Shown here: one piece after another, positions 1,191-50,595 of the stretch
Position numbering within the stretch: the first letter of the stretch is position 1
Layout of the letters: each line of letters begins with the position of its first letter
NCBI GenBank assembly: GCA_025558095.1
Contig: JAIVFI010000038.1
Span: 248,001 to 312,000 of the forward strand
Origin: Hyaloraphidium curvatum SAG 235-1
Lineage: Eukaryota > Fungi > Monoblepharomycota
Direction of reading: 5' to 3'
DNA: 64,000 nt
Notes under the pieces: model-generated
The model's database searches: none
Told to the model about the DNA's origin: nothing
What the model saw: the letters and a program-made list of their open reading frames with translations, nothing else
Made by a program: the position numbers and the translations under genes

Positions 1191-2627
1191 ATGGCCAGCA
1201 CGCTCGTGGACTCGCTGCTGCACCCCGTCGAGCTCGTCTCGCTCGTGCGCTTCCTGCTCTCGCCCGACCCCGCGGCCGGGTACAGCAAGGAGCCCAAGGA
1301 CGAGGCCGACACCTACGCCTGGTGCTACTATTTCCTGAACATGACCTCGCGCTCGTTCGCGCGGGTGATCCAGACCCTGAACGAGGAGCTGCGGCACCCG
1401 GTCTGCATCTTCTACCTCGTCCTGCGCGGGCTCGACACCGTCGAGGACGACATGACGCTGGACCTGCCCCGGAAAGTGGAGATTCTGGGCTCCTTCCACA
1501 AGCTCATCTACCAGAAGGGATGGACGTTCGATGAGAACGGGCCGAACGAGAAGGACCGCATGCTCCTCGTCCGCTTCGACACCGTCATTACCGAGTTCCT
1601 GAAGCTCGATGCAAAGTGAGCTTCGGGCGCTGTAGCTGCGCCTGGCAGGAGCATCCGTGCTAACGCAACTGCTTCCAGATACCAGACCGTCATTGCCGAC
1701 ATCTGCCAGCGGATGGCCAAGGGGATGATCGACTTTGTCAGCGGCAAGACGGTCGAGACTCTGGACGACTACAACCTCTACACGCACTACGTAGCGGGGC
1801 TGGTCGGGCTCGGCCTGACGGACCTCTTTCTCGCCAGCAATCTGGAGCCGGACCTCGCGGCCCTCAGCGAGGTTGGTTCGCGCCTCTGGGCTGTCAGAAG
1901 TGCTCGCTAACTTGCTCTGAAGGAACATCGGTACCGGCTGGCAAACTCGATGGGCCTGTTCCTGCAAAAGGTCAACATCACGCGCGACTTCACGGAGGAC
2001 CTCCTGGACGGGCGGAAGTTCTGGCCGAGGGACATCTATTCGAACTATGCCTCCTCGCTCGAAGAGCTCCCGACCAAGCCCGAAATGGCGCGCGCATGCC
2101 TGAACAACATGTGCGCCGACGCCATGACGTTGATACCCGACTGCCTGGAGTACCTCAGCCTTCTCCGCGAGCCCTCTGTGTTTGCCTTCTGCGCCATCCC
2201 CCAGGTATGTGAATTGAAGCGCTTTTCCAGCGCGAGACTGACGATCTCATTCCCCCAGGTCATGGCAATTGCCACGTTCGACCTCGTGTTCGACAACCCC
2301 GCCCTCTTCCACATGCCCCTCCTCAAGATCCGGAAAGGGACCGCAGCGCAGATGATGCTCGAGTCGGGGGACATGGGCAACGTCGTGCGGACTTTTTCGT
2401 ACTACGTGTCGAGCATCAGGGCAAAGAACTTGGTCGTGCGGCGCCGTGCCGGGCCTGAGGTGAAGGCGGGCGTGTGCGACCGGATCGATCGCAGCTGCGA
2501 CGATGCGGATCGCTGCTCGAAGGCGCTTCAGGAGAAACTGGGCGAGAGCTGGAGCTGGCTCCAGCCTCTGCGGCCCGTCGTAGTCTTGGCCGTCGGTGTT
2601 GCTCTCTTCACCATGTCGAGCGGTTGA
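1191..2627 (+). CDS. ERG9: Squalene synthase (farnesyl-diphosphate farnesyltransferase), 4 exons
   Basis: [66 protein letters not shown] and a C-terminal TM anchor; GT-AG introns near 1616, 1872 and 2205. Confidence 0.97.
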
Positions 2628-3602
2628 TCATGTGTTTGAGCTTGGAGATATGCGCCATTGATTATAGAATTGGACGATTTCGGACTCGCTCCAGCCCGAT
2701 CCGGTGAAGCCCCCGTCCTCCAAAGCCTTCATCAGAGCCCCAAGTTGCTTCCCGGGCGGCAGCCCAGTGATGCGCATGATCGTGGCTCCATCGAGACGGC
2801 TCTGGCGCTCCAAACGTTGCCGTCTGTCCTCGGCAATAAGCCTTTCTCTTTCAGCAACTTTGGAAAAGTGTTCGACAGGATCCGGAGGGTGGATCGGGTT
2901 GGGCTTCGTGGGGCCGAGCTCCTCAAGGTACCCAAGCCATCGCTGGAAACCTCCACGTTTTGCTCGCCGCCGTCGGTTGTGTCTGTCCATATCGTCAACG
3001 TGCCAGATTTCCGAGCGAAAGTACAGGCTGCTCGAAAGCCAACGAAAGAGGTCGGACTCGTCCGCGAACCCTTCAAAGAAACGAGCGTGGTCGTAGCCGA
3101 GATAGGCAAGAATCAGGGCGAAATCTTTCGACAGATGTACCCTGCCAAGCGTCCGCAAGGGCTCGTCCGTGTCGAAGACAGGGCACGAGAGTCCGTCCAT
3201 CCCAAAGCTGAGGCCGAACTGCTTCGCTATTGCTCCCATGATGGCTCCCGCATCGCCATAGCTGAGGTAGTTGAGCATGCAATCGTACCCATCTTCTTCC
3301 TCGACGACGATGAGGTCGATCTGGAAGGAATCACGCTCGAGCGACACGGTCGTCTTGCTCGTCCAGACGACCTCGCGCGACGAGAATGCTTCGGCAATCT
3401 CGGGTACGGCGGCTTCCCATCCCGTTCGCGCCAAGCACACGCAGTCCACGTCTCCGAAATCGGGCTTTGAGTCCAGGTACCGGGGCACGTCGACCTTCGC
3501 GAAGAACTGGCGAACGAGCGCCAACACTCGTCCCTCCACGACGAGGTACTCGGGCCGTGGCACGCGCCGGAGAACGCAATTCTTCAGCGCCGAGCCTCCC
3601 AT
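2628..3602 (-). CDS. Intronless Pol-beta-superfamily nucleotidyltransferase-like protein
   Basis: Starts MGGSALK; hG-DxD-type motif KPDFGDVDCVC; third Asp in FQIDLI; YLSYGDAGAIMGAIAKQFGLSFGMDGL; C-terminal LDGATIMRITGLPPGKQLG resembles CCA-enzyme tails. Confidence 0.7.
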   Translation of the reverse strand: MGGSALKNCVLRRVPRPEYLVVEGRVLALVRQFFAKVDVPRYLDSKPDFGDVDCVCLARTGWEAAVPEIAEAFSSREVVWTSKTTVSLERDSFQIDLIVVEEEDGYDCMLNYLSYGDAGAIMGAIAKQFGLSFGMDGLSCPVFDTDEPLRTLGRVHLSKDFALILAYLGYDHARFFEGFADESDLFRWLSSSLYFRSEIWHVDDMDRHNRRRRAKRGGFQRWLGYLEELGPTKPNPIHPPDPVEHFSKVAERERLIAEDRRQRLERQSRLDGATIMRITGLPPGKQLGALMKALEDGGFTGSGWSESEIVQFYNQWRISPSSNT

Positions 3603-5595: not shown

Positions 5596-6034
5596 ATGGA
5601 TCTCGTCAAGGCAGCTGCCCTGCTCGGAAGCTCGGCCGTGATTCTGGGCGCGTTTGGAGCACACGGTCTCCGGACGCGATTCGCGTCGCTCCCGGACGGC
5701 GGCCTGGCCAAATTGAAGAGCTGGGAGACAGCGGGTTTGTTCCCATGTCGGTCAATACGTGCCGTATCGCCTGATGGCATCGACAGCACACTACCAGCTC
5801 ATGCATTCGGTCGCCGTTCTCGCGCTGGGGCTGAGGCAGCGGGATCGTTCAAAGACCTTTCCCTCGAACATGGCGACTGCAGGCAATCTCTGGCTGGTTG
5901 GAGCGGCCATGTTTTCCGGATCGATCTATGCCCTGGTCCTGAACCCTCACTGGCGTATCCTCGGACCCGTGACCCCGCTCGGAGGAATGGCGATGATTGC
6001 CGGATGGGCGGTTCTCGCATTTGGATCAGAATGA
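5596..6034 (+). CDS. DUF423/TMEM256 (YgdD-like) membrane protein, 2 exons
   Basis: GAFGAHGL, WETA|AHYQLMH, FSGSIY and LGPVTPLGG motifs. Confidence 0.93.
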
Positions 6035-6037
6035 AGG

Positions 6038-7167
6038 CTACATGTTTCCCTTTTCACGGACGTTGGAAAGTCCGGCATTCTGCGCAAAGCCGGGGTCCAT
6101 CAAGCTGCCGAACCGGATCATGTTGTGGCTGCAGACATGGCACCAGTCAGAGCTGTCCAAGATTGCGGAAGTGCAGCAGCCAACCTGTGACCAATGTGGT
6201 GCATAGAGAATGCCGCGTTGATCGCATTCTGCTGACCCGCCATGTCCGACGCCTGGTTGACGGACTCTTTCGCCAGCTTAAGCCCAAAGAGGGGCTTCAT
6301 CGCGATGCGTCGAGCCATCTGCTGCACGAAGCCGTGGAGCTGCTCGCGGGGCACCACGTGGTTGACCATGCCGAGGCGATGCGCCTCCTGCGCCGTCCAG
6401 GTGTCGGCGGTGAAGAGAAACTCCTTGGCCTTGCGAGGGCCGAGCTCGTACGAGTGCGCGAACCACTCGACGCCGTTGACGCCCGCCCCGACGACCGGGT
6501 CCTGGAAGGTCGCATCCTCGCTCGCGACGACGATATCCATGGGCCAGATCAACATGAGCCCGCCGGCGATGACGCGGCCATGGACCTGCGCCAATGTGAG
6601 ACTCTTTCCTCACGAGACGGGGCGGAAGTTCCCAACCTGCGCGATCGTCGGCTTCGGAATGTTCCTCCAGCGGCGACAGAAGCCCAGGTAGATTTCCTCT
6701 TCCCTGTTCATGTGCCCCTCCGCACCCGGCGCACCGAAGCAGCAGCTGGTTCCGACCTGCCCAAAGTCTTCCAGGCGTCCCCCGTCGCGAAGATCGTGGC
6801 CTGAGGAAAAAAGCGGGCCCTCTCCGGCGAGGATGATGACCTTGACGTTGGGGTCGGCCGCTGCCATGTTGAACGCGTCATTGCTGGAGACGCATTGTAA
6901 GCAAGCACCCGTGGGAGACGCTCCACAGTGTACTTGCAGTTCGTAAAGCAGAGCCCCGCTCTGCGCATTGCGGGCCTTCGCGCGGTCCAAGTAGATGCGA
7001 GCAATGCCCGCGTCAGGGTGCCTCTGGCCCGCCTGGACTGCAGGAACTTCGTAGCGAATGTTCGGGAACTGGGTGACCTCGAAGGGGTTCCCGTCGATGA
7101 CTTTCGTCGACTTGGATGGCGGAACAGGACTTGAAAGAGGGTGCGATGCCACGCTGACTTGCGACAT
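6038..7167 (-). CDS. Enoyl-CoA hydratase/isomerase (crotonase), bacterial-like subfamily, multi-exon
   Basis: ARNAQ, FSSGHDL, RWRNIPKPTIAQ|VHGRVIAGGLML, ELGPRKAKEFLFTAD, GMVNHVVP. Confidence 0.92.
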
Positions 7168-41949: not shown

Positions 41950-43326
41950 TCATCCTTGCCCCCCGCCGGGACACACGCTCTCCACCGTCACCCCGATCCC
42001 CGCCCCGCGGAGCACGCTCCACAGCCCGATTCCCACCGTGAGCATCGTCGCCGCCGCCGTGCGCACGACGGCGAAGGTGACGGGGACCCCGAACGCGCGC
42101 GCCTGGAACTCGCGGGTGCGGGAGAGCGATTCGAGCATCCCCACGTGCAGCCCGATGGCATGCGAGGCGGAGGGGTCGGGGGAGCGGAAGGAGAGGCCGC
42201 GGAGCTGCAATGCGGCCGAGGCGTAGAGCTTGCCGACGCGGGCGGGCTCCAGGTTGGCGGCCGCGACGGCGGCGAGGTCCCCGAGGAAGTACAGGAGCAT
42301 GAGGAGGAAGGCGGCCAGGTGCCCCGCGTTGACGCAGCCGGCTCCGAACATGCCCACGCACACCGCCGCGGCTTCGGCGAGGGTGCCGGTGGCGTTGAGG
42401 AAGCGCGCACCCAGGGCGGCGGCGAACCGCTGCCGCCAGGACGCCGCGAGCGCGGCGTGCAGAGCGACGTAGGGTTCCTCCTCCGCGGGGAGCGGGGCAG
42501 CCTTGTCCGGCCCGGGGGAGGCGACGACGCGGTCCATGCGCGCGAGGAGGGCATCCAGGCACAGGGCAACGGCGCGGATGCGGAGGCGCAGGTCCAGCCG
42601 GAGGACGGCGGGGTTGGAAACCGTCGCGGCAAAGCCCAGGGCGTTGACGAATAAGTAGAAGGTCAGGTAGGCGAGACACAGGGCGCAGAGGGCGGCGGAC
42701 CAGGGCGTGGTCCACGTGGAGGAGGCAAAGGTGACCAGGCCCGTCCAGTTGAACAGCGCCGAGTTGATGAAGTTGTACACGACCGCGGTGCTGAGGAAGC
42801 CGGCGACCGGGAGCACGGCCAGCGAGTGGCGGATCCCGCCGGCGCAGGCGGGCAGGGGGCAGGGGCACAGGTCGTCGTCCGGGTCGTGGTCCAGCAGCCT
42901 CTGCGGTGGCCGATCCGCGTCGGGCGAGGCGGCCCACGCGTCCGCGAGCTGCCTGTACCGCGCGAGGCCGGCCAGCTGGTTGTTGTCGCACAGATGGCCC
43001 TCGTCGGGCAGGAACTTTGGTGCGCCGCGGCCGGGGACCCGGCCGCGCAGGTTCGGGACCATCCACAGGAGCGCCGCGAGCACGAACTGGGCGGTCGACG
43101 TCGCCAGCTGGCGCGTGCCGAAGCGGCCGTCGTTGAAGACCCACGGCAGCACGGAGAGGAGTGCCGAGGCGGCCACGGCCGCGCCGGCGCGGGCCGCGAG
43201 CGTGCGCGACGTCCACAGCCGGATCCGCAGGTCGGCCGCGGTGAACGCCGCGAGCACCGGCGTCGGTCGCAGCGCCGCGGCAAGGGCCGCCGGCGTCAGA
43301 GGGCGCGCGGCTCGCGCCTCGGCGCC
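41950..43326 (-). pseudogene. 3' portion of a multi-pass membrane protein gene interrupted by the retroelement
   Basis: 435-aa ORF with several TM segments and no ATG until ~70 codons in. Its frame continues upstream to PGAEARAARPLT at the element junction. Confidence 0.65.
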
Positions 43327-46300
43327 GGGAGGTGGGCCGCGACGCCAAGAGCCCAGGCCACCGCGATCCGTGCGCGGAAGCGCCGCACAAAACGAGAGTA
43401 AAGGCCATCGAGGTCCACGGGCTGCCCATCGCGGCCGACGATCCCGGGATACTGGATGCGCCCCAGCTCCGAGGAGAAGCGCGAGAAAGGGGCAGAGACA
43501 GCGCTGTACGAATCAAAAGCAAGCACGATCAGAGGGTAGAAGTTGGCGTGGAAGACGAAACGGGAGTAGTCCTTCCTGGCGGCCTCGACCCGCCGTTCGA
43601 CTGCGTGGCCCGGGACCGAGAAGACCAGGCCCGTGGGCAAATGGGCCATAGAGGTGAGGGTCTTGATCTCGAGCAACCACCGTTTCCGGGTGTCGCGGTG
43701 CGTGATGAGAATGTCGCCAAGGCGGCCAGCATCCGCAGGCGTGGGCGGGGTGACAGGCTCGTAGCCATGCGCAAGGAGGTTTGGCGGCATGGGGTGCACG
43801 CGGAGGAGCGGGATGGAGCGAAGCGCCGCGCGGATGGCCGCGCAAATGTCGTCGTGACCAGGACTGAAGAGAGCCCGGCCATAGCAGCCCGAGAACGCGT
43901 GCTCCCCCGTCAGCGACATGGCCGATCGCTTGCAGCCCCGCCGGCAGGGCAAGGAAAGACCAGGGTAGTCGGCCTCGTGCAGGAGCGGGAGGCAAAGCCG
44001 GAAGCGTACAAGTAAGCGGAAAAAGTGGTTGCGAATGTGGTTGGCAAGCAGCGCGGGAGAGGCAGGCAGGAAAGCCGACAGGCCGTCCTGCGCCTGGACG
44101 AGCCGCTTGCGGCGCTCCAGACCAGCGGAAGTGTCGGGTGGCAAGGCAATCAGAGCCGCGAGGCGGCGCTGGTCCTCGAGACGCGTAAGGTCGCTCTGCA
44201 GGCCGTGCCAGACCGGCTGAGCGAAGAAACTGGCGTCCGCAGGGAGCGTACGGCGGGCGGGCGCGGCGCCCACCGGTTGCCCAGCACGCGCAGCCTCGGC
44301 GTACGCTGCGGCCGTGTCATCCTCGACACGCTCAAAGGCGGGGCCGAGGGCCTCGATGACGGGAACCAGTTCCCGCACGTGCTCCACGCCCACACCCCTG
44401 GCCGAGGTTCGAAGACCAAGCATGGCGTCCAAGGGGCCCGCCATGAGGTTGAGTGAAGACAGGTAAGCCGCCGAGGCCACCTTCTCCGATGACAGAAGCC
44501 CCATCCCCGAGTAGTGCAGACCCAAGAATACCTGCTCCCGCACAGTCCGACCCTCCACCGACAGCGGATCCAGATCCTCGGCCCGATCTCCCAGCAAGCG
44601 CAAGAAGGTGGTGAAAAGCGCGTCGTCAAGACGTCGAGCAAAGGGTGGGGTAACCGAGGGGGGGAGAATGCGGAGCCAAAACGAGAAGAGCTGGGTCACA
44701 CAGAGACGGAGGAGGGAGTACAGGCCCTGGAGGGAGGGGATGTCGGCCGGCATGGCGTAGCCGAGCGCGGCGCGCTCGATTTCATCGAGAAGAGCGGCAA
44801 TGGAGTCGATCGTGGCCGCGAGGAACGACTCCACATAGGCAGGGGTGCCGACCGGGGCACCTACCACCTTGAGGCCGCACGAGCGAGCGAAGTCAGGCGA
44901 GCCCGGGGCCGACGCCGTGGCATGCACCTCGGGGTCGGCCTCGTGAGGCGGGAAGCCAGCGACGCGGATGTTGTGGGCCGCACCGGCCGCGCGCACCCGC
45001 TCCAGCACGGCCGGGTTCGTCGAGAGCGAAAGCAGGTAGCTCTTGTCCGGGCGGTGGGTCATGCCGAGGGAAGAAAGGCCGTCACGCACCTCTCCCAGGA
45101 CGGCCATGACCGAGTCCAGCGGCCCGACCACGGTGAGGTCGTCGAGGTACCCAAGGATGAGGCAGTCGGGGTGCCCAGAGCGGATGGGCCGCAGCATGCG
45201 GCTCATGGCGCAGGAGAAGATGGCAGACGACAGCGGGTCGCCCTGGATGTTGCCCTCGTACATGGTGATCCGGAAAAGGAGCTCCGCCGAGCGCCGGTCG
45301 CGGAAGTAGGCGTGGGAAGGGCGCGAGTAAACGAGGTTGTAGTACGGGATAAGCTGAGGCACCTGGCGGACCACCTCGCGCGCGAAGAGGCGGCGCAGCG
45401 TATTGAAGGCGTTCCTAGAGTCGACCTTCATGACGACGTGGTCGGGGAAGGCCGCCAGCCACGCGTTCACCGCGTGGGCGGTCGCCTCCGCGCCCCCGTC
45501 CACCCCGTGACCCAGGTCCTCCTGCTGTTGGAGCTTCCTCAGAAGAGCCTTGTGCCGCACGGCCAGGTACGAGCCCGCGAGCCGCGTGATGCCCTCCATA
45601 ATGCCAATCGGCCGGAGCCCCCCCTCCGGCTTGAGCAGAGGGACGAGGATTTGATCCGTGAGGAGCGGCCGGAGCATGGGGGTGTCGAGTCGGCCAGTGC
45701 ACACGCCATGCACCATGGCCGCCAGCGGGCGGAGCTTCCGCCGCGTCGCGTCGTTCTCGCAGTTGTGCACGATGAAAAGTTTGGCCATGCTGAAACCCGA
45801 CATGCCGGCCCCCACGCCGTCCTTCTTCCGGCGCAACCGGGCCCAGATGTCCTCCAGGAAAGCCGCGTCCGTGTAGGCAGGGCAGGGCGCGGGCGCGTTG
45901 GGGGGCAGAGACAGCCGACACAGCGGCTCTCCCTCCCGCGGCCCCGGGTACAGCTCCTCCAGTTCCGCCTGAAGCGTGGGCGTGAAGCCAGCCGGAACGG
46001 CCTCCCCCGAGAGGGCCGCGGACGCAGCACCAGGAGCGCCCTTCAAGGCGGCAAGCACGATGGACTTGAAGAGCTGGTAGTTGAGCGGCCGCAGCCCGTC
46101 CCGCCGCGCGCCCCGGTTGACCTGACGGGCGGCGAAGTAGTTCTGCTCGTACATGTAGTCCCCCGACATGACGTAGCCGCCAAACGCAAGGTAGGCGGTG
46201 AGAGTGCGGTGCAGGTCGGTTTCCGGTGCCGCCGGGTCCTCGTAGGCCCGTTGGAAAGACTCGCTGGCCCGGAAGGCGAGCGTGCTCCAGGTGGTGGTCC

Positions 46301-47132
46301 GGTAGCGGTGCTTCAGCGGCTCCGGCGGCGGCGCCCCCGCGCCCCCGCCCGGCGGCGGATCAGGCCCGGGACCCCCGGGTGGACCACCGTCGCCCGGGTC
46401 GCCCGGATCACCGCCGTTGCCGTGCCCGCCAGCCGCGGCGTTGCCGCCCGGCGCGCCGTCGCCGCCTGGGGGATCACCGCCGTCCGGGGCGGCACGCGCC
46501 GCCGCCGCCGCCGCCGCCAGCGCCGCCCGTTGCGCCTGGCCGTCCTGCGGGGCGTCGGCCGCAACCCGGGCGGCCGCAAGGGCCGCCATCAGCGCGGGCG
46601 CGGGTGGCGAAGCACGGGGAGATGCCGACGATGCCGCTGGTGACGCCGGTCCCTCCGCGCGTCCCGTGGCAGCCGCCCGCTCGGCACGCACGCGGTCGAG
46701 GAACTCGACGAGATCGGGTGGAAGCGAAGCTAAAGAGACGCCGAGTGGCGGGTTAGCTGCGTCCGGGTTGCACGAGGTGTGCTGTCCAGAAACACCGGCA
46801 CCAGAGGCGTTTGCGGCGTAGGGACGCCGGCAACCCCCGCACCGCGCTAGCCCCATGGCGCGCAACGCATCGGCAGACAGGCGCTGCATCGCCAACCAGT
46901 GCTCCGGGCTCCGTGTGACCCGAAGATGACCGTCCCGTTTGTTTTTGTTTGGAGTTGGCTGGAAGCGGCAACCATCAACCGGGCACTCATGGAGGCCGGG
47001 TTCAGCAGGCGCCTCCGCCATCGGCACATCGCCGTCGATGCAAGATTGGTGATGATGAGATAGAGCTCCGATGTTGGCGAAAGCTGCCGCGCAGCGGTGG
47101 CAGCTGTAAGGCAGGAGCGGCGTGCGGCTCAT
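43296..47132 (-). CDS. Retroelement ORF3: zinc fingers + reverse transcriptase + RLE endonuclease (1278 aa)
   Basis: N-terminal CxxC..H..C fingers; GGLRPIGI, KVDSRNAFN, GNIQGDPLS, GYLDDL, KVVGAPVG; C-terminal CRRGC..EHAFSGC, HDDI, GDIL..LEIK, RIAVAW. Confidence 0.95.
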   Translation of the reverse strand: MSRTPLLPYSCHRCAAAFANIGALSHHHQSCIDGDVPMAEAPAEPGLHECPVDGCRFQPTPNKNKRDGHLRVTRSPEHWLAMQRLSADALRAMGLARCGGCRRPYAANASGAGVSGQHTSCNPDAANPPLGVSLASLPPDLVEFLDRVRAERAAATGRAEGPASPAASSASPRASPPAPALMAALAAARVAADAPQDGQAQRAALAAAAAAARAAPDGGDPPGGDGAPGGNAAAGGHGNGGDPGDPGDGGPPGGPGPDPPPGGGAGAPPPEPLKHRYRTTTWSTLAFRASESFQRAYEDPAAPETDLHRTLTAYLAFGGYVMSGDYMYEQNYFAARQVNRGARRDGLRPLNYQLFKSIVLAALKGAPGAASAALSGEAVPAGFTPTLQAELEELYPGPREGEPLCRLSLPPNAPAPCPAYTDAAFLEDIWARLRRKKDGVGAGMSGFSMAKLFIVHNCENDATRRKLRPLAAMVHGVCTGRLDTPMLRPLLTDQILVPLLKPEGGLRPIGIMEGITRLAGSYLAVRHKALLRKLQQQEDLGHGVDGGAEATAHAVNAWLAAFPDHVVMKVDSRNAFNTLRRLFAREVVRQVPQLIPYYNLVYSRPSHAYFRDRRSAELLFRITMYEGNIQGDPLSSAIFSCAMSRMLRPIRSGHPDCLILGYLDDLTVVGPLDSVMAVLGEVRDGLSSLGMTHRPDKSYLLSLSTNPAVLERVRAAGAAHNIRVAGFPPHEADPEVHATASAPGSPDFARSCGLKVVGAPVGTPAYVESFLAATIDSIAALLDEIERAALGYAMPADIPSLQGLYSLLRLCVTQLFSFWLRILPPSVTPPFARRLDDALFTTFLRLLGDRAEDLDPLSVEGRTVREQVFLGLHYSGMGLLSSEKVASAAYLSSLNLMAGPLDAMLGLRTSARGVGVEHVRELVPVIEALGPAFERVEDDTAAAYAEAARAGQPVGAAPARRTLPADASFFAQPVWHGLQSDLTRLEDQRRLAALIALPPDTSAGLERRKRLVQAQDGLSAFLPASPALLANHIRNHFFRLLVRFRLCLPLLHEADYPGLSLPCRRGCKRSAMSLTGEHAFSGCYGRALFSPGHDDICAAIRAALRSIPLLRVHPMPPNLLAHGYEPVTPPTPADAGRLGDILITHRDTRKRWLLEIKTLTSMAHLPTGLVFSVPGHAVERRVEAARKDYSRFVFHANFYPLIVLAFDSYSAVSAPFSRFSSELGRIQYPGIVGRDGQPVDLDGLYSRFVRRFRARIAVAWALGVAAHLPAPRREPRAL

Positions 47133-47980
47133 GGCGAATACGGTGGCGGCGGCGATGCCGGTGTCCCGCCGCCAGGATCAGCTACCGCGGACGGTGCCTT
47201 GTCCGACGAGATCTCCCAATCGTCGAGCGCATGTGTCCGCATCCAAACCTCCTGTGACTCGGTCAGGTCGCCCCCCGCCCTGTGCCAGGCCGCAAGCGCC
47301 GACCACGCGTCACCGATAGCATCACGGCCGCCGTCATCGAGGAGCTCGGAACCTGGCCATTCGAGGTGCGCCGGCGAACCGGGCTCCGTGTGAGCATACC
47401 AAGGAGGCAAGGTGCGCGTCGGAGTGGATACTTCCGAGGAGCTCTGCCCCCCCCCGGCCGTTTGTGCCGGCGGCGTGCCGGGGGTTGTGCGGGGCGGCGC
47501 AGGCGGCAGCTGCAAGCTCGGCACGGCGGTTGCAGCTGGGGTTTCCCACGGAGGATGGCCTGGGTGCGCCGAGAGCATGGAAGCGGCCGAAGCCGGGGCA
47601 TCAGCGATCAAGATCTGCGATGACGAGGAGGGAGATACTTCCGAGCATGCCGCCCCTTTCCCCCCCGCTGGTGCCGGCAAGCGGGAGGAGCCGCGGGGCG
47701 GCGTGGGCAGAGTGTGACCCTCGGCCAAGCTAGGCACGGCATTTGGCCGAGGGGCCCCGGGGGACGCGGGGTCAATGTCGGAAGTCTCCCCTGCTGCCGC
47801 GAACGGCCTCGGAACTCGGTGAGACGTTGTAGATAGTGGTAGTTGGCGTACCGGTGAAGACTGCAAAACAGCAAAAGATGGAGGGGCTGACCGCGCCCGG
47901 GAGGTATCCGGACGAGCTCGGCGCCGAGAAGAGCAGCCCACTACTCGGCGTTGCCACTTGCTTGGTGGTGTTTTAGGCAT
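47129..47980 (-). CDS. Retroelement ORF2: 283-aa protein of unknown function
   Basis: Exactly fills the gap between ORF1 and ORF3 with start/stop overlaps at both ends; Trp-rich C-terminal segment; ends PPPPYSP. Confidence 0.6.
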   Translation of the reverse strand: MPKTPPSKWQRRVVGCSSRRRARPDTSRARSAPPSFAVLQSSPVRQLPLSTTSHRVPRPFAAAGETSDIDPASPGAPRPNAVPSLAEGHTLPTPPRGSSRLPAPAGGKGAACSEVSPSSSSQILIADAPASAASMLSAHPGHPPWETPAATAVPSLQLPPAPPRTTPGTPPAQTAGGGQSSSEVSTPTRTLPPWYAHTEPGSPAHLEWPGSELLDDGGRDAIGDAWSALAAWHRAGGDLTESQEVWMRTHALDDWEISSDKAPSAVADPGGGTPASPPPPYSP

Positions 47981-50111
47981 TCAAGGACGGTGAGCCAGGA
48001 GCCGGCAGCAGGGATCCGGTTGACGTGGAGGCGGCCTTGGCCTGGGGGGAGCCGAGCTTGCGAACGGCCGCCTTGGCCTTCCGTTCCGCTTTGGCGGATT
48101 TGACGTCGATTTGCTGATACGGCTTGGCAACCTTGTCCGGGTTTGTCCCTGCCACATCCTCCACGGGACGGCCCTTGCCTGCGTGCTTGGGGCCTGGGGC
48201 CATCGTAGGATCACCAACCGCGGATGCCCCAGCGGCCTCATCGGCCGTGTGCATGTCTTCGCTTGGTGCCTCCGAGTTCGAACCATCGCCCTCAGCAGAG
48301 GCTTCGGAGGCGGCGTCGTTTCCACCCGAGGCCTCAGAGCCGGTGGCATCCTCCTCCATCGCAGATTCCGTGCCCTCCATTGCGGGAGCAGCAAGCTCCA
48401 GATCCTCCAGCGCGGTATTGGCTGCAACCTGCTGTGCAGCACTGCTGATGGCGTTCTCAGCGGCCAGCTGGTCGGCACCACCCATGTCCTCGTCCCCATC
48501 CTTGTCAGCCGGCTCCAAAATGGGAAGACCATGGAAATCCATCTTTTCGGCGGCGTCAGACTCCCCCCAATCGACCGAAGCACCGGCACCACCACCACCG
48601 AGTGCCGAAAACCTGTTGTGGGACGCCTTGGCCACTGGCTGGGCAAGAGCGGGGGGCGCAGAGCCTGCGCGCTTGCCGGACGGCCCAGCTGTAAGCCACT
48701 CGTTGGCCGCAGGGGCGGTGGGGGAAGCCAGATGCGGAGGAACGACCTCTTCCCTCAGGGGGGGCAGCCGCGGGGTCGTGGCGGGCTCCACCGTTGGGGG
48801 AGAGAGCCGTACGTTGGCCGGGTTGTGAATGCAGTCCGCCTCGTGCGCACGGCGTGCTTGCGGGCTGGCAAAGGCGCCGGGATTCATGCGGTTGAGACCG
48901 TCTGGGCAGTAAGCACAGTTGGTGCACGTGGCATCGTCACCGACGTGGCCGCCCGTGCGCTTGCAGTGGCCGCACTGTCCGTTGCTACTGTCATAGCGGA
49001 CAGCTGGGCGAAGGAGCTTGTGCTGGAGGAGTGTCCCCCACGAGTCAAGGAAGCAGTACGAGGGTGGGCCAATGCGTGCTGCGCGGTCAAAGAAGGCATC
49101 AACCCCGCACTGCGAGACGTCGAAAGTGACCCGCCAGAAGGCGTTGCTGTCGGTGCCCGAGATGGGAGCCGCTTCAATGACTTGGCAAGGGGCCCCATAG
49201 TGGTTCTGGAAAGTCGCGTAGAGGCGGGCCCACCAGTCCGGGCACTCGTGCACCGAACCAGGGACGATCATGGGCCCGATCTTGAGCTCGGCGTGCGTGT
49301 CCTTGAAGACAGGGTGGATGCGCAGCCGACGCGTCGGGCCGTTTGGGAACTTGACCTCCAGCACCCCCTGCTCCACCAAGGCGTTGATAGCGTCTGCCCC
49401 GTCGACAGCACCAACAACACAGAAGAGGTCCAGTCGCGAGTAACGCGGGTTGTAGCCTCGCGTCTCGGTCGTGAAGACGGTGGTGGGGAAGGTCGCCTTC
49501 GCCACGGCTTCGGCGACGACGCGCCGTCGGTCCTTTGGCACACCGTTGAGGTCGATGAGGCAGTGGGGGACAGGCCCAATGAAGGCCGGCGTGTAGCCCC
49601 GACCGTTGGCGTGCGGTTGCACCCGATCGATGAGCTTGGCGTAGTTGGTGGGCGCCGAGAAAGGCATGGCAGAAGCCAGATGCTCCGCCATCGCGCCGTC
49701 CGTGACACGAACAATCGGGCGGTCGGGCGAGGTGCGCGACGTTGCTGCGGCGAAAGAGCGAGACCCCAGGCGCGTGGCGGGGGCGGTTGCTTTCGGGAGA
49801 CGATTCTGCGGAGCCGGCTCCTCCCGGGCGCCGCCGTTGGCGGACGCGGGGCGGATTTCAGTGGTCGATTCAGCAGCGTCCTCCTTAGAACCTGTCAGCT
49901 GAGCCGTAGCACCAGCGGGGGCCGGCGCGGGCTCCTCTGCCGCGCCAGGGAGGCGAGGAGAGGCAGCGACGCCGGGAGCGTGGGAAGAGTGGACGGGATT
50001 CGCAAGCGCCTCCGAGGAGGCCGCGGCGAGCGCAGGGGAGACCTTGCCATCAGGCAGGACCACGGGAGCGGCCGCATCATTGGGCCCCTGCCCTGTGTCA
50101 GGGGGGTCCAT
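47973..50111 (-). CDS. Retroelement ORF1 (gag-like nucleic-acid-binding protein, 712 aa)
   Basis: SFAAAT motif, folded central region, CGHCKRTGGH......C knuckle, second CAYC..H...C finger, HNRFSAL motif typical of LINE ORF1p, acidic disordered tail. Confidence 0.8.
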   Translation of the reverse strand: MDPPDTGQGPNDAAAPVVLPDGKVSPALAAASSEALANPVHSSHAPGVAASPRLPGAAEEPAPAPAGATAQLTGSKEDAAESTTEIRPASANGGAREEPAPQNRLPKATAPATRLGSRSFAAATSRTSPDRPIVRVTDGAMAEHLASAMPFSAPTNYAKLIDRVQPHANGRGYTPAFIGPVPHCLIDLNGVPKDRRRVVAEAVAKATFPTTVFTTETRGYNPRYSRLDLFCVVGAVDGADAINALVEQGVLEVKFPNGPTRRLRIHPVFKDTHAELKIGPMIVPGSVHECPDWWARLYATFQNHYGAPCQVIEAAPISGTDSNAFWRVTFDVSQCGVDAFFDRAARIGPPSYCFLDSWGTLLQHKLLRPAVRYDSSNGQCGHCKRTGGHVGDDATCTNCAYCPDGLNRMNPGAFASPQARRAHEADCIHNPANVRLSPPTVEPATTPRLPPLREEVVPPHLASPTAPAANEWLTAGPSGKRAGSAPPALAQPVAKASHNRFSALGGGGAGASVDWGESDAAEKMDFHGLPILEPADKDGDEDMGGADQLAAENAISSAAQQVAANTALEDLELAAPAMEGTESAMEEDATGSEASGGNDAASEASAEGDGSNSEAPSEDMHTADEAAGASAVGDPTMAPGPKHAGKGRPVEDVAGTNPDKVAKPYQQIDVKSAKAERKAKAAVRKLGSPQAKAASTSTGSLLPAPGSPSLNA

Positions 50112-50126
50112 TCCGGGTAAATGCTA

Positions 50127-50203
50127 GCGCCAGGCATCTCAGCAGCGGCGGCGCGTCCCGGGGGAGGGGCGGCGGGGGCGCCGCGGGGAACAGCGCGGCC
50201 CAT
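50127..50203 (-). pseudogene. 5' portion of the interrupted membrane protein gene (MGRAVPRG...AEMPGA)
   Basis: Joining at the GGCGC repeat gives EMPGA|EARAARPLTP... in frame with ORF 41950..43257. Alternative ATGs at 50296 and 50137. Confidence 0.5.
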
Positions 50204-50595
50204 TCCGCGGCGGTGAATGGGAAGACGGGGGCTCCGGGGCCGTCCATTGCCGCGAAGTTGTTTCAACGGAGCTCGCAAGTTCGAAGTTGGTGGCATCCGA
50301 TCGACCCGATTGGCGGCGTTGATCCTCTCGGCCCTAGGTTAAGAAACTGAGCAGTATCGCAACTTTATGCAGACCGTGCGAAGTCCAGAGTCACATTTCT
50401 TGCGGTGGTGAACAAATCCCGCCGATCCACGTCATTAGAGCCCTTGGGGTCCTTGAAGGACTCGCCACCTTTTCTCGGCCCGTACTCCACCCGCGGACCT
50501 GACTGGGCCCAGGAGTGCATTACCGAGTTAAGGGGAGCTGCTCACTTGCAACGAAAAGCTGGAGGACAAGTACCCGCAACAGGAAGACCCGGTCC

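Follow-up and report, generated by a model that had tools for sequence, protein, structure and literature searches.

A 64-kb stretch of the Hyaloraphidium curvatum genome (31.9-Mb, 55-contig assembly), referred to below as the window, holds three minus-strand open reading frames (ORFs) that together make up a putative retrotransposon inserted into a host reading frame. An earlier reading of the same DNA from its letters alone (the sequence-only reading) had described three tiled ORFs at this locus, and our analysis confirms their positions (Table 1). ORF1 and ORF3 lie in a common reading frame. Both of the stop/start overlaps that had been proposed are present in the sequence; at the RNA level they read AUGCCUAA (ORF1/ORF2) and AUGA (ORF2/ORF3), and they are kept in all copies of the element.

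The DNA of the window has a G+C content of 65–72%. Since long ORFs commonly arise by chance at such a composition, the openness of ORF2 needed a test of its own. Its frame has a TGA immediately before the ATG and then runs through 283 codons without a stop, and the other two frames of the same interval hold 7 and 5 stops. When the region is shuffled, the probability of an open ORF2 frame is 0.002. The three-ORF tiling thus exceeds chance. Two long antisense ORFs lie opposite ORF1 (48111–50120, plus strand, 669 aa) and ORF3 (44514–46643, plus strand, 709 aa). They are an expected by-product of coding sequence rich in G+C at third codon positions on the opposite strand and are not evidence of genes.

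Table 1. Features of the window copy and its insertion site (window coordinates)
Feature	Position	Strand	Remarks
Upstream target word CTGAGA (host gene)	50137-50142	-	
Host bases from the predicted first nick (word plus 8 nt) to the element 5' end	50123-50128	-	predicted from the family rule
5' leader, ~11 nt	50112-50122	-	boundary ambiguous by 1-9 nt
ORF1	47973-50111	-	712 aa
ORF1 Cys/His cluster	48906-48974	-	
ORF1 stop/ORF2 start overlap ATGCCTAA, 8 nt	47980-47973	-	TGA (ORF2 frame) directly precedes
ORF2	47129-47980	-	283 aa; +1 frame relative to ORF1 and ORF3
ORF2 stop/ORF3 start overlap ATGA, 4 nt	47132-47129	-	same in all copies spanning it and in the diverged copy
ORF3 as read in the window	43296-47132	-	1278 aa
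Element-encoded part of ORF3	43334-47132	-	1266 codons
N-terminal C2H2-like motif of ORF3	47040-47102	-	zinc-finger-like
Reverse transcriptase, Pfam RVT_1	44979-45632	-	8e-10
YLDD	45138-45149	-	
CCHC, C-x3-C-x10-H-x4-C	43884-43946	-	
Endonuclease residues D..ExK	43659-43718	-	GD 43710-43718; ExK 43659-43670
Host-gene bases read through by ORF3 to a fortuitous TGA	43296-43333	-	host frame continues from 43332
Break point where the window copy leaves the family	43328-43333		4-6-nt microhomology between element and host

Conservation of the three-ORF layout

A DNA search of the assembly found 25 further copies with 98.7–100% identity, and a protein search of the same genome found at least 55 family pieces. 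Overall, identity among the copies and fragments, at least 50 in number, spans 96.6–100%. The 5' ends of the copies from the DNA search lie at element positions 1–21 or are truncated at positions 1853–3258. ORF1 has 712 aa in 16 of the 16 copies that span the region. ORF2 has 283 aa in 19 copies of the alignment and is open in 21 copies by a separate count. Every aligned copy that spans the 8-nt and 4-nt overlaps has them in identical form. Both junction motifs are also preserved in a more diverged copy on contig 2, which is dead (96.65% identity) and whose ORF2 frame is open except for one 1-nt indel; a further indel in ORF2, of 3 nt, is in frame.

The sequence-only reading had suggested a genome search of this kind and had named fused ORFs in other copies, or an ORF2 full of stops, as observations that would speak against it. 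Neither occurs in any copy spanning the region, and no copy in the assembly lacks the ORF2 region. The three-ORF layout with its overlaps is a family trait and not a peculiarity of the window copy. The claim of a very short 5' leader also stands, as every full-length copy has its ORF1 ATG within 0–12 nt of the 5' junction, and "essentially no 5' untranslated region" (UTR) holds for the family.

The claim that the element has no 3' UTR and no poly(A) or microsatellite tail fails. More than 20 other copies run on past window position ~43328–43333 with a common sequence of ~155 nt, which consists of 37 more ORF3 codons, a UTR of ~45 nt and a CATTAC(AC)0–3 end; in copies with a full 3' end, ORF3 therefore has 1303 aa. 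The match of the window copy to the family runs to position 43333; after a mismatch at 43332, four more bases are shared, by chance or as microhomology. The last ~12 codons and the stop of ORF3 as read in the window are junction and host sequence, and the protein match to other copies stops 10 residues short of the end of the window ORF. The window copy thus seems to be without a 3' UTR because its last ~155 nt have been lost. UTRs merely lost from this copy were a further observation that the sequence-only reading had set against itself, and such a loss is what we find, though the lost UTR is short. Either internal priming on the RNA at the microhomology or a normal insertion followed by a microhomology deletion of ~160 bp fits this loss. 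The intact family form is ~6.95 kb long and comprises the 0–12-nt leader, ORF1 (712 aa), ORF2 (283 aa), ORF3 (1303 aa), the ~45-nt 3' UTR and a CATTAC(AC)n end.

Three copies (L014 after element position 6119, L015 after position 5967, and L019 on its 5' side, at position 2082) are interrupted by or abut one common foreign terminal sequence, once as its reverse complement. This suggests that another mobile element has repeatedly landed in or next to the family.

ORF3, ORF1 and the target site

ORF3 has a Pfam RVT_1 reverse transcriptase (RT) domain, and the catalytic motifs YLDD and D..ExK, which had been recognized from the sequence, are found in it. The CCHC motif and GD...ExK lie within ORF3 residues 1063–1158, C-terminal to the RT, and the Cys, His and Asp columns of this region are nearly invariant across 12 relatives. 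Compared with solved structures, a profile of this 12-relative family matches R2 proteins at 3e-27 and L1 ORF2p at 4e-11. The CCHC and endonuclease columns align to the R2 C-terminus, weakly by sequence profile, and they also fall inside the full-length fold match. An AlphaFold model of ORF3 residues 420–1278 has a predicted local distance difference test (pLDDT) score of 74.6, and its top fold matches are R2 proteins over 910–930 columns, with a sequence identity of 12–15%.

A word-index protein search with the RT-endonuclease region gave one weak match; an exhaustive search gave 4995 relatives, the best non-self match being 30% identical. The nearest RT relatives (24–34% identity) are metagenome proteins and proteins of Cymbomonas, Closterium and Diplonema, and the contigs of the nearest relatives carry single ORFs. 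The family has the features of the restriction-like endonuclease (RLE) type: an RT of the kind that lacks long terminal repeats (non-LTR), a C-terminal CCHC motif with PD-(D/E)xK, and no apurinic/apyrimidinic endonuclease (APE) domain. The single ORF that is usual for this type is not found, as every full-length copy has three. Given the RVT_1 domain, the motifs and the profile and fold matches to R2, ORF3 alone would thus be a complete R2-type enzyme, with catalysis predicted, and the sequence-only assignment to the RLE-type non-LTR retrotransposons is upheld. As a whole, we consider it probable that the family is a young, multicopy, transcribed non-LTR retrotransposon of H. curvatum of the RLE (R2-like) kind.

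ORF1 has a structured core (~aa 130–440) between disordered flanks. The core is 100% identical at the protein level in 18 copies, and three comparisons give 30 synonymous and 22 non-synonymous substitutions for ORF1. No Pfam family and no database or atlas relative was found for ORF1, nor a homologue for its core; the atlas leads for the core all score below 0.9 and point only to CCHC-type proteins. A single-sequence structure model of the core has a pLDDT of 39 and was not used for a fold search. Neither ORF1, ORF2 nor the ORF3 N-terminus has a match in 203 RT relatives, which include relatives of ~2000 aa. As in L1-type long interspersed nuclear elements (LINEs), the RT ORF is preceded by one that has a Cys/His cluster; a gag-like role is therefore plausible, and ORF1 may be an RNA-binding partner of the enzyme. 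Unlike L1, the enzyme ORF is RLE-type rather than APE-type, and ORF1 has no detectable similarity to L1 ORF1p.

Seventeen independent insertions have a recognizable target duplication. In 14 of them, CTGAGA or a one-base variant starts 12–14 nt before the duplication, mostly at exactly –14, and the exact word is found in 11. T/C-T precedes the word, giving the consensus YTCTGAGA; the background of the target word is 7e-5 per position in the window. The duplications measure 6–14 bp. Taken with the position of the word, they imply a first nick 8 nt downstream of it and another one 6–14 nt further. The footprints of target-primed reverse transcription (TPRT) are present: one 3' end in at least 20 copies, 5' ends at many positions, 6–14-bp duplications and extra bases at the 5' junction. 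The insertions are dispersed and have only YTCTGAGA in common; they do not lie in the 28S rRNA gene, the target that characterizes the R2 clade.

In the proposed mechanism, the ORF3 protein would bind the 3' end of its own RNA, read the target word through its N-terminal fingers, nick the bottom strand 8 nt from the word and prime reverse transcription there; the top strand would be cut 6–14 nt further on. The 3' end folds no more stably than shuffled sequences (z = 0.37), which counts against the overall reading.

Head-to-tail pairs of copies ~90–185 nt apart occur on contigs 1 (L003/L010), 35 (L019/L026) and 43 (L014). They fit repeated use of the word, which survives upstream after an insertion.

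Expression of the three ORFs and the status of ORF2

Contigs of sequencing run X1 carry the joint of a 71-nt GT..AG intron (minus strand) in the neighbouring host gene, where it lies in the 5' region (window 50503–50573), and the run therefore holds RNA. One X1 contig of 3583 nt corresponds to window 46530–50111 and covers ORF1 and ORF2 completely, as well as 600 nt of ORF3, without a joint. An RNA check across the junctions had been proposed, and this unspliced contig, which spans both, fits a tricistronic RNA. It also bears on the idea that ORF1 and ORF3 become joined into the usual single ORF of RLE elements when the ORF2 region is spliced out as an intron. The common frame of ORF1 and ORF3 would suit such a fusion, but the contig is unspliced across the region, every genomic copy keeps it, and an intron of ~800 nt would be needed where the host intron that we see has 71 nt; we regard this explanation as extremely improbable.

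The k-mer depth of the element is 222 over ORF1/ORF2 and 506–1065 over the RT region, compared with 4–20 in the flank, and is to be read with the caution that contigs show neither RNA ends nor expression levels. At the ORF1 ATG the X1 contigs fork into the 5' flanks of other copies, one of them at about half the depth of the element. Transcription thus seems to begin in part upstream of the element, and some of the element RNA may be read-through from host promoters, which weighs, like the limits of the contigs, against the main reading. The rise in depth towards the RT region could also mean that ORF3, and with it ORF2, is expressed without coupling, from separate shorter transcripts (the many 5'-truncated copies could be transcribed alone) or from an internal ribosome entry site. 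The same rise is, however, what 5'-truncated copies predict in contigs that are no measure of expression. Exact stop/start overlaps would be unnecessary in either case, and an Rfam scan found no known RNA family or structure. Uncoupled expression is thus unlikely in our view.

Leaky scanning to ORF2 and ORF3 is excluded: ORF1 contains 23 ATGs, and ATGs are not depleted. Because of these ATGs, and because both restart ATGs sit on stop codons, stop-restart at both overlaps is the best remaining reading and a plausible one, in which ORF2 and ORF3 would be reached by termination-reinitiation on one tricistronic RNA.

A fusion of the ORFs by programmed frameshifting, +1 at the end of ORF1 and –1 at the end of ORF2, would agree with the frames, ORF1 and ORF3 being in the same frame and ORF2 in +1. 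The end of ORF1, GCC-TAA-G, resembles Ty3-type or stop-stimulated +1 shift sites. Against this, the ORF2 frame is closed by a TGA two codons ahead of the ORF1 stop, which leaves a shift window of two codons, and no X-XXY-YYZ slippery heptamer precedes ATGA; nor would frameshifting call for ATGs exactly at both overlaps. We consider it very unlikely.

UGGGA occurs at ~47214–47218 (minus strand), ~85 nt upstream of the ORF2/ORF3 AUGA, possibly by chance, and is absent before the ORF1/ORF2 junction. In caliciviruses, this pentamer forms the core of the reinitiation motif, which pairs with 18S rRNA.

The predicted ORF2 product has a Pro/Ser/Ala-rich N-terminal two-thirds and a Trp-rich C-terminal third that ends in PPPY. 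Scored with the element's own codon usage, aa 191–283 are coding-like. In a relative from run X2 (~96–97% identity), the nine differences listed for the last 80 ORF2 codons are seven synonymous and two non-synonymous, a result that comes from one short low-depth contig and does not list all differences; in the other two frames, the same nine give 2:7 and 1:8. The corresponding synonymous:non-synonymous counts in this run are 10:5 for ORF1 and 6:3 for ORF3. Pooled over the comparisons, the changes in ORF2 number 16 synonymous and 19 non-synonymous (46% synonymous), compared with ~28% expected under neutrality and ~57% in ORF1 and ORF3. Together with a frame that is open throughout the family and begins and ends on the neighbouring stop and start codons, and with the in-frame 3-nt indel of the diverged copy, these patterns suggest that ORF2 is likely to be translated and under constraint in at least part of its length, probably most strongly in the Trp-rich C-terminal third, with a fast-evolving N-terminal part.

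Several results, in addition to the limits of the X2 contig, weigh against a constrained ORF2. The third-position bias in X2 falls on sites that are also third positions of an antisense ORF of 98 aa (47097–47393, plus strand). The codon-usage score is negative for aa 1–190, while the disordered parts of ORF1 and ORF3 score as coding, and the G+C content of ORF2 is flat over codon positions 1, 2 and 3 (0.67/0.70/0.65). Changes shared within the family are one synonymous and five non-synonymous, and the diverged copy has 8:12 in ORF2 versus 11:9 in ORF1 and 27:24 in ORF3. No Pfam family, atlas lead, homologue or metagenome-contig relative of ORF2 was found, and a protein language model gives it a low recognition score. 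All but the first of these results would also fit an ORF2 that makes no functional protein and is either an open spacer without a role or a relay ORF that carries ribosomes to the ORF3 start, its peptide being irrelevant. The coding-like last third with its 7:2 ratio, the pooled 16:19 set against the neutral expectation, and the low probability of a pure chance open frame (~0.002) argue the other way, and we find this explanation rather unlikely. The boldest form of the stop-restart reading is a true tricistron with two successive termination-reinitiation events after long ORFs, in which ORF2 would be a lineage-specific, largely disordered relay protein whose frame stays open chiefly to pass ribosomes on to the RT gene; we put it forward tentatively, as possible but doubtful.

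Known elements and the interrupted host gene

Two reviews describe RLE elements as single-ORF elements without an ORF1 (PMC3894237; PMC4640811); according to the latter, most members of the RLE clades insert at specific sites, and their one protein has zinc fingers at the N-terminus, followed by RT, a further zinc finger and the RLE. CRE elements were once described with two ORFs and, in the account of PMC12278014, are now mostly read as having one. R2 (Bombyx R2Bm, bird and turtle R2; structures 8gh6, 9nl3 and 9dou) has the same order of parts as ORF3, namely Cys/His–RT–linker–CCHC–PD-(D/E)xK, and the H. curvatum family resembles it in site-specific insertion with the hallmarks of TPRT. R2 has a single ORF, a 28S rDNA target and a long structured 3' UTR. 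Unlike R2, the H. curvatum family has two extra upstream ORFs, an 8-bp word that is used genome-wide and a ~45-nt UTR without an unusual fold. The CRE (CRE1/2, SLACS, CZAR), NeSL/Utopia, R4 and HERO elements likewise bear an RLE. They insert into spliced-leader genes, U2, tRNA genes or microsatellites, and the tails of CRE elements are poly(A); the H. curvatum family is set apart from CRE by its target, TCTGAGA plus 8 nt, and its (AC)n tail.

Stop/start coupling itself has been described. The silkworm telomeric LINE SART1 uses termination-reinitiation at UAAUG (as cited in PMC3894237), and UAAUG termination-reinitiation is also described for the hypovirus CHV1 in its fungal host (PMC2699510). 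Both have one such junction; the H. curvatum family would have two in series, after 712 and 283 codons. Our literature search turned up neither a precedent for an RLE element with three tiled ORFs, which is no proof of absence, nor a paper on Hyaloraphidium retroelements. We see in the family a variation on the R2-like RLE kind, distinguished by its two additional tiled ORFs, the near absence of UTRs and word-plus-8 targeting.

If true, a tricistron with a relay ORF would be an architecture undescribed for RLE-type elements. RLE-type LINEs, which are under development for gene insertion, are regarded as simple ancestors of LINEs with a single ORF. A family that is young and apparently active would serve as a compact model, found in nature, of how LINEs acquired ORF1-type partners and of how eukaryotic ribosomes reinitiate after long ORFs. 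Its fixed spacing from recognition to nick (word plus 8 nt) would offer a clean system in which to study target choice. Should ORF2 be no more than a relay ORF, it would represent a new way to set the ratio of RT to ORF1 protein.

In the window, the element interrupts a host reading frame on the minus strand that starts with an ATG at 50247, is cut at 50123/50122 and resumes at 43332. The two parts of the host ORF (41950–43332 and 50123–50247) rejoin in frame, with a 1–2-nt overlap, when the element is removed. No target duplication is found at this insertion. The host bases between the predicted first nick and the 5' end of the element (Table 1) would occupy the place of the upstream copy of the duplication, with no downstream copy present.

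Once duplications are counted, the two longest copies turn out to begin with ~9 bases of target sequence rather than of the element. In the family, 3–31 extra, untemplated bases are often found between the duplication and the 5' end of the element. HDV-like (hepatitis delta virus-like) ribozymes process R2 RNA and could have explained the tiny leader. The Rfam scan matched no family, HDV-like ribozymes included. At the 5' junctions, L006, L008 and L020 share a short leader ending before the ATG that differs from the one shared by L009, L011, L015 and L017; these subset-specific endings may be subfamily 5' leaders or template-switch additions.

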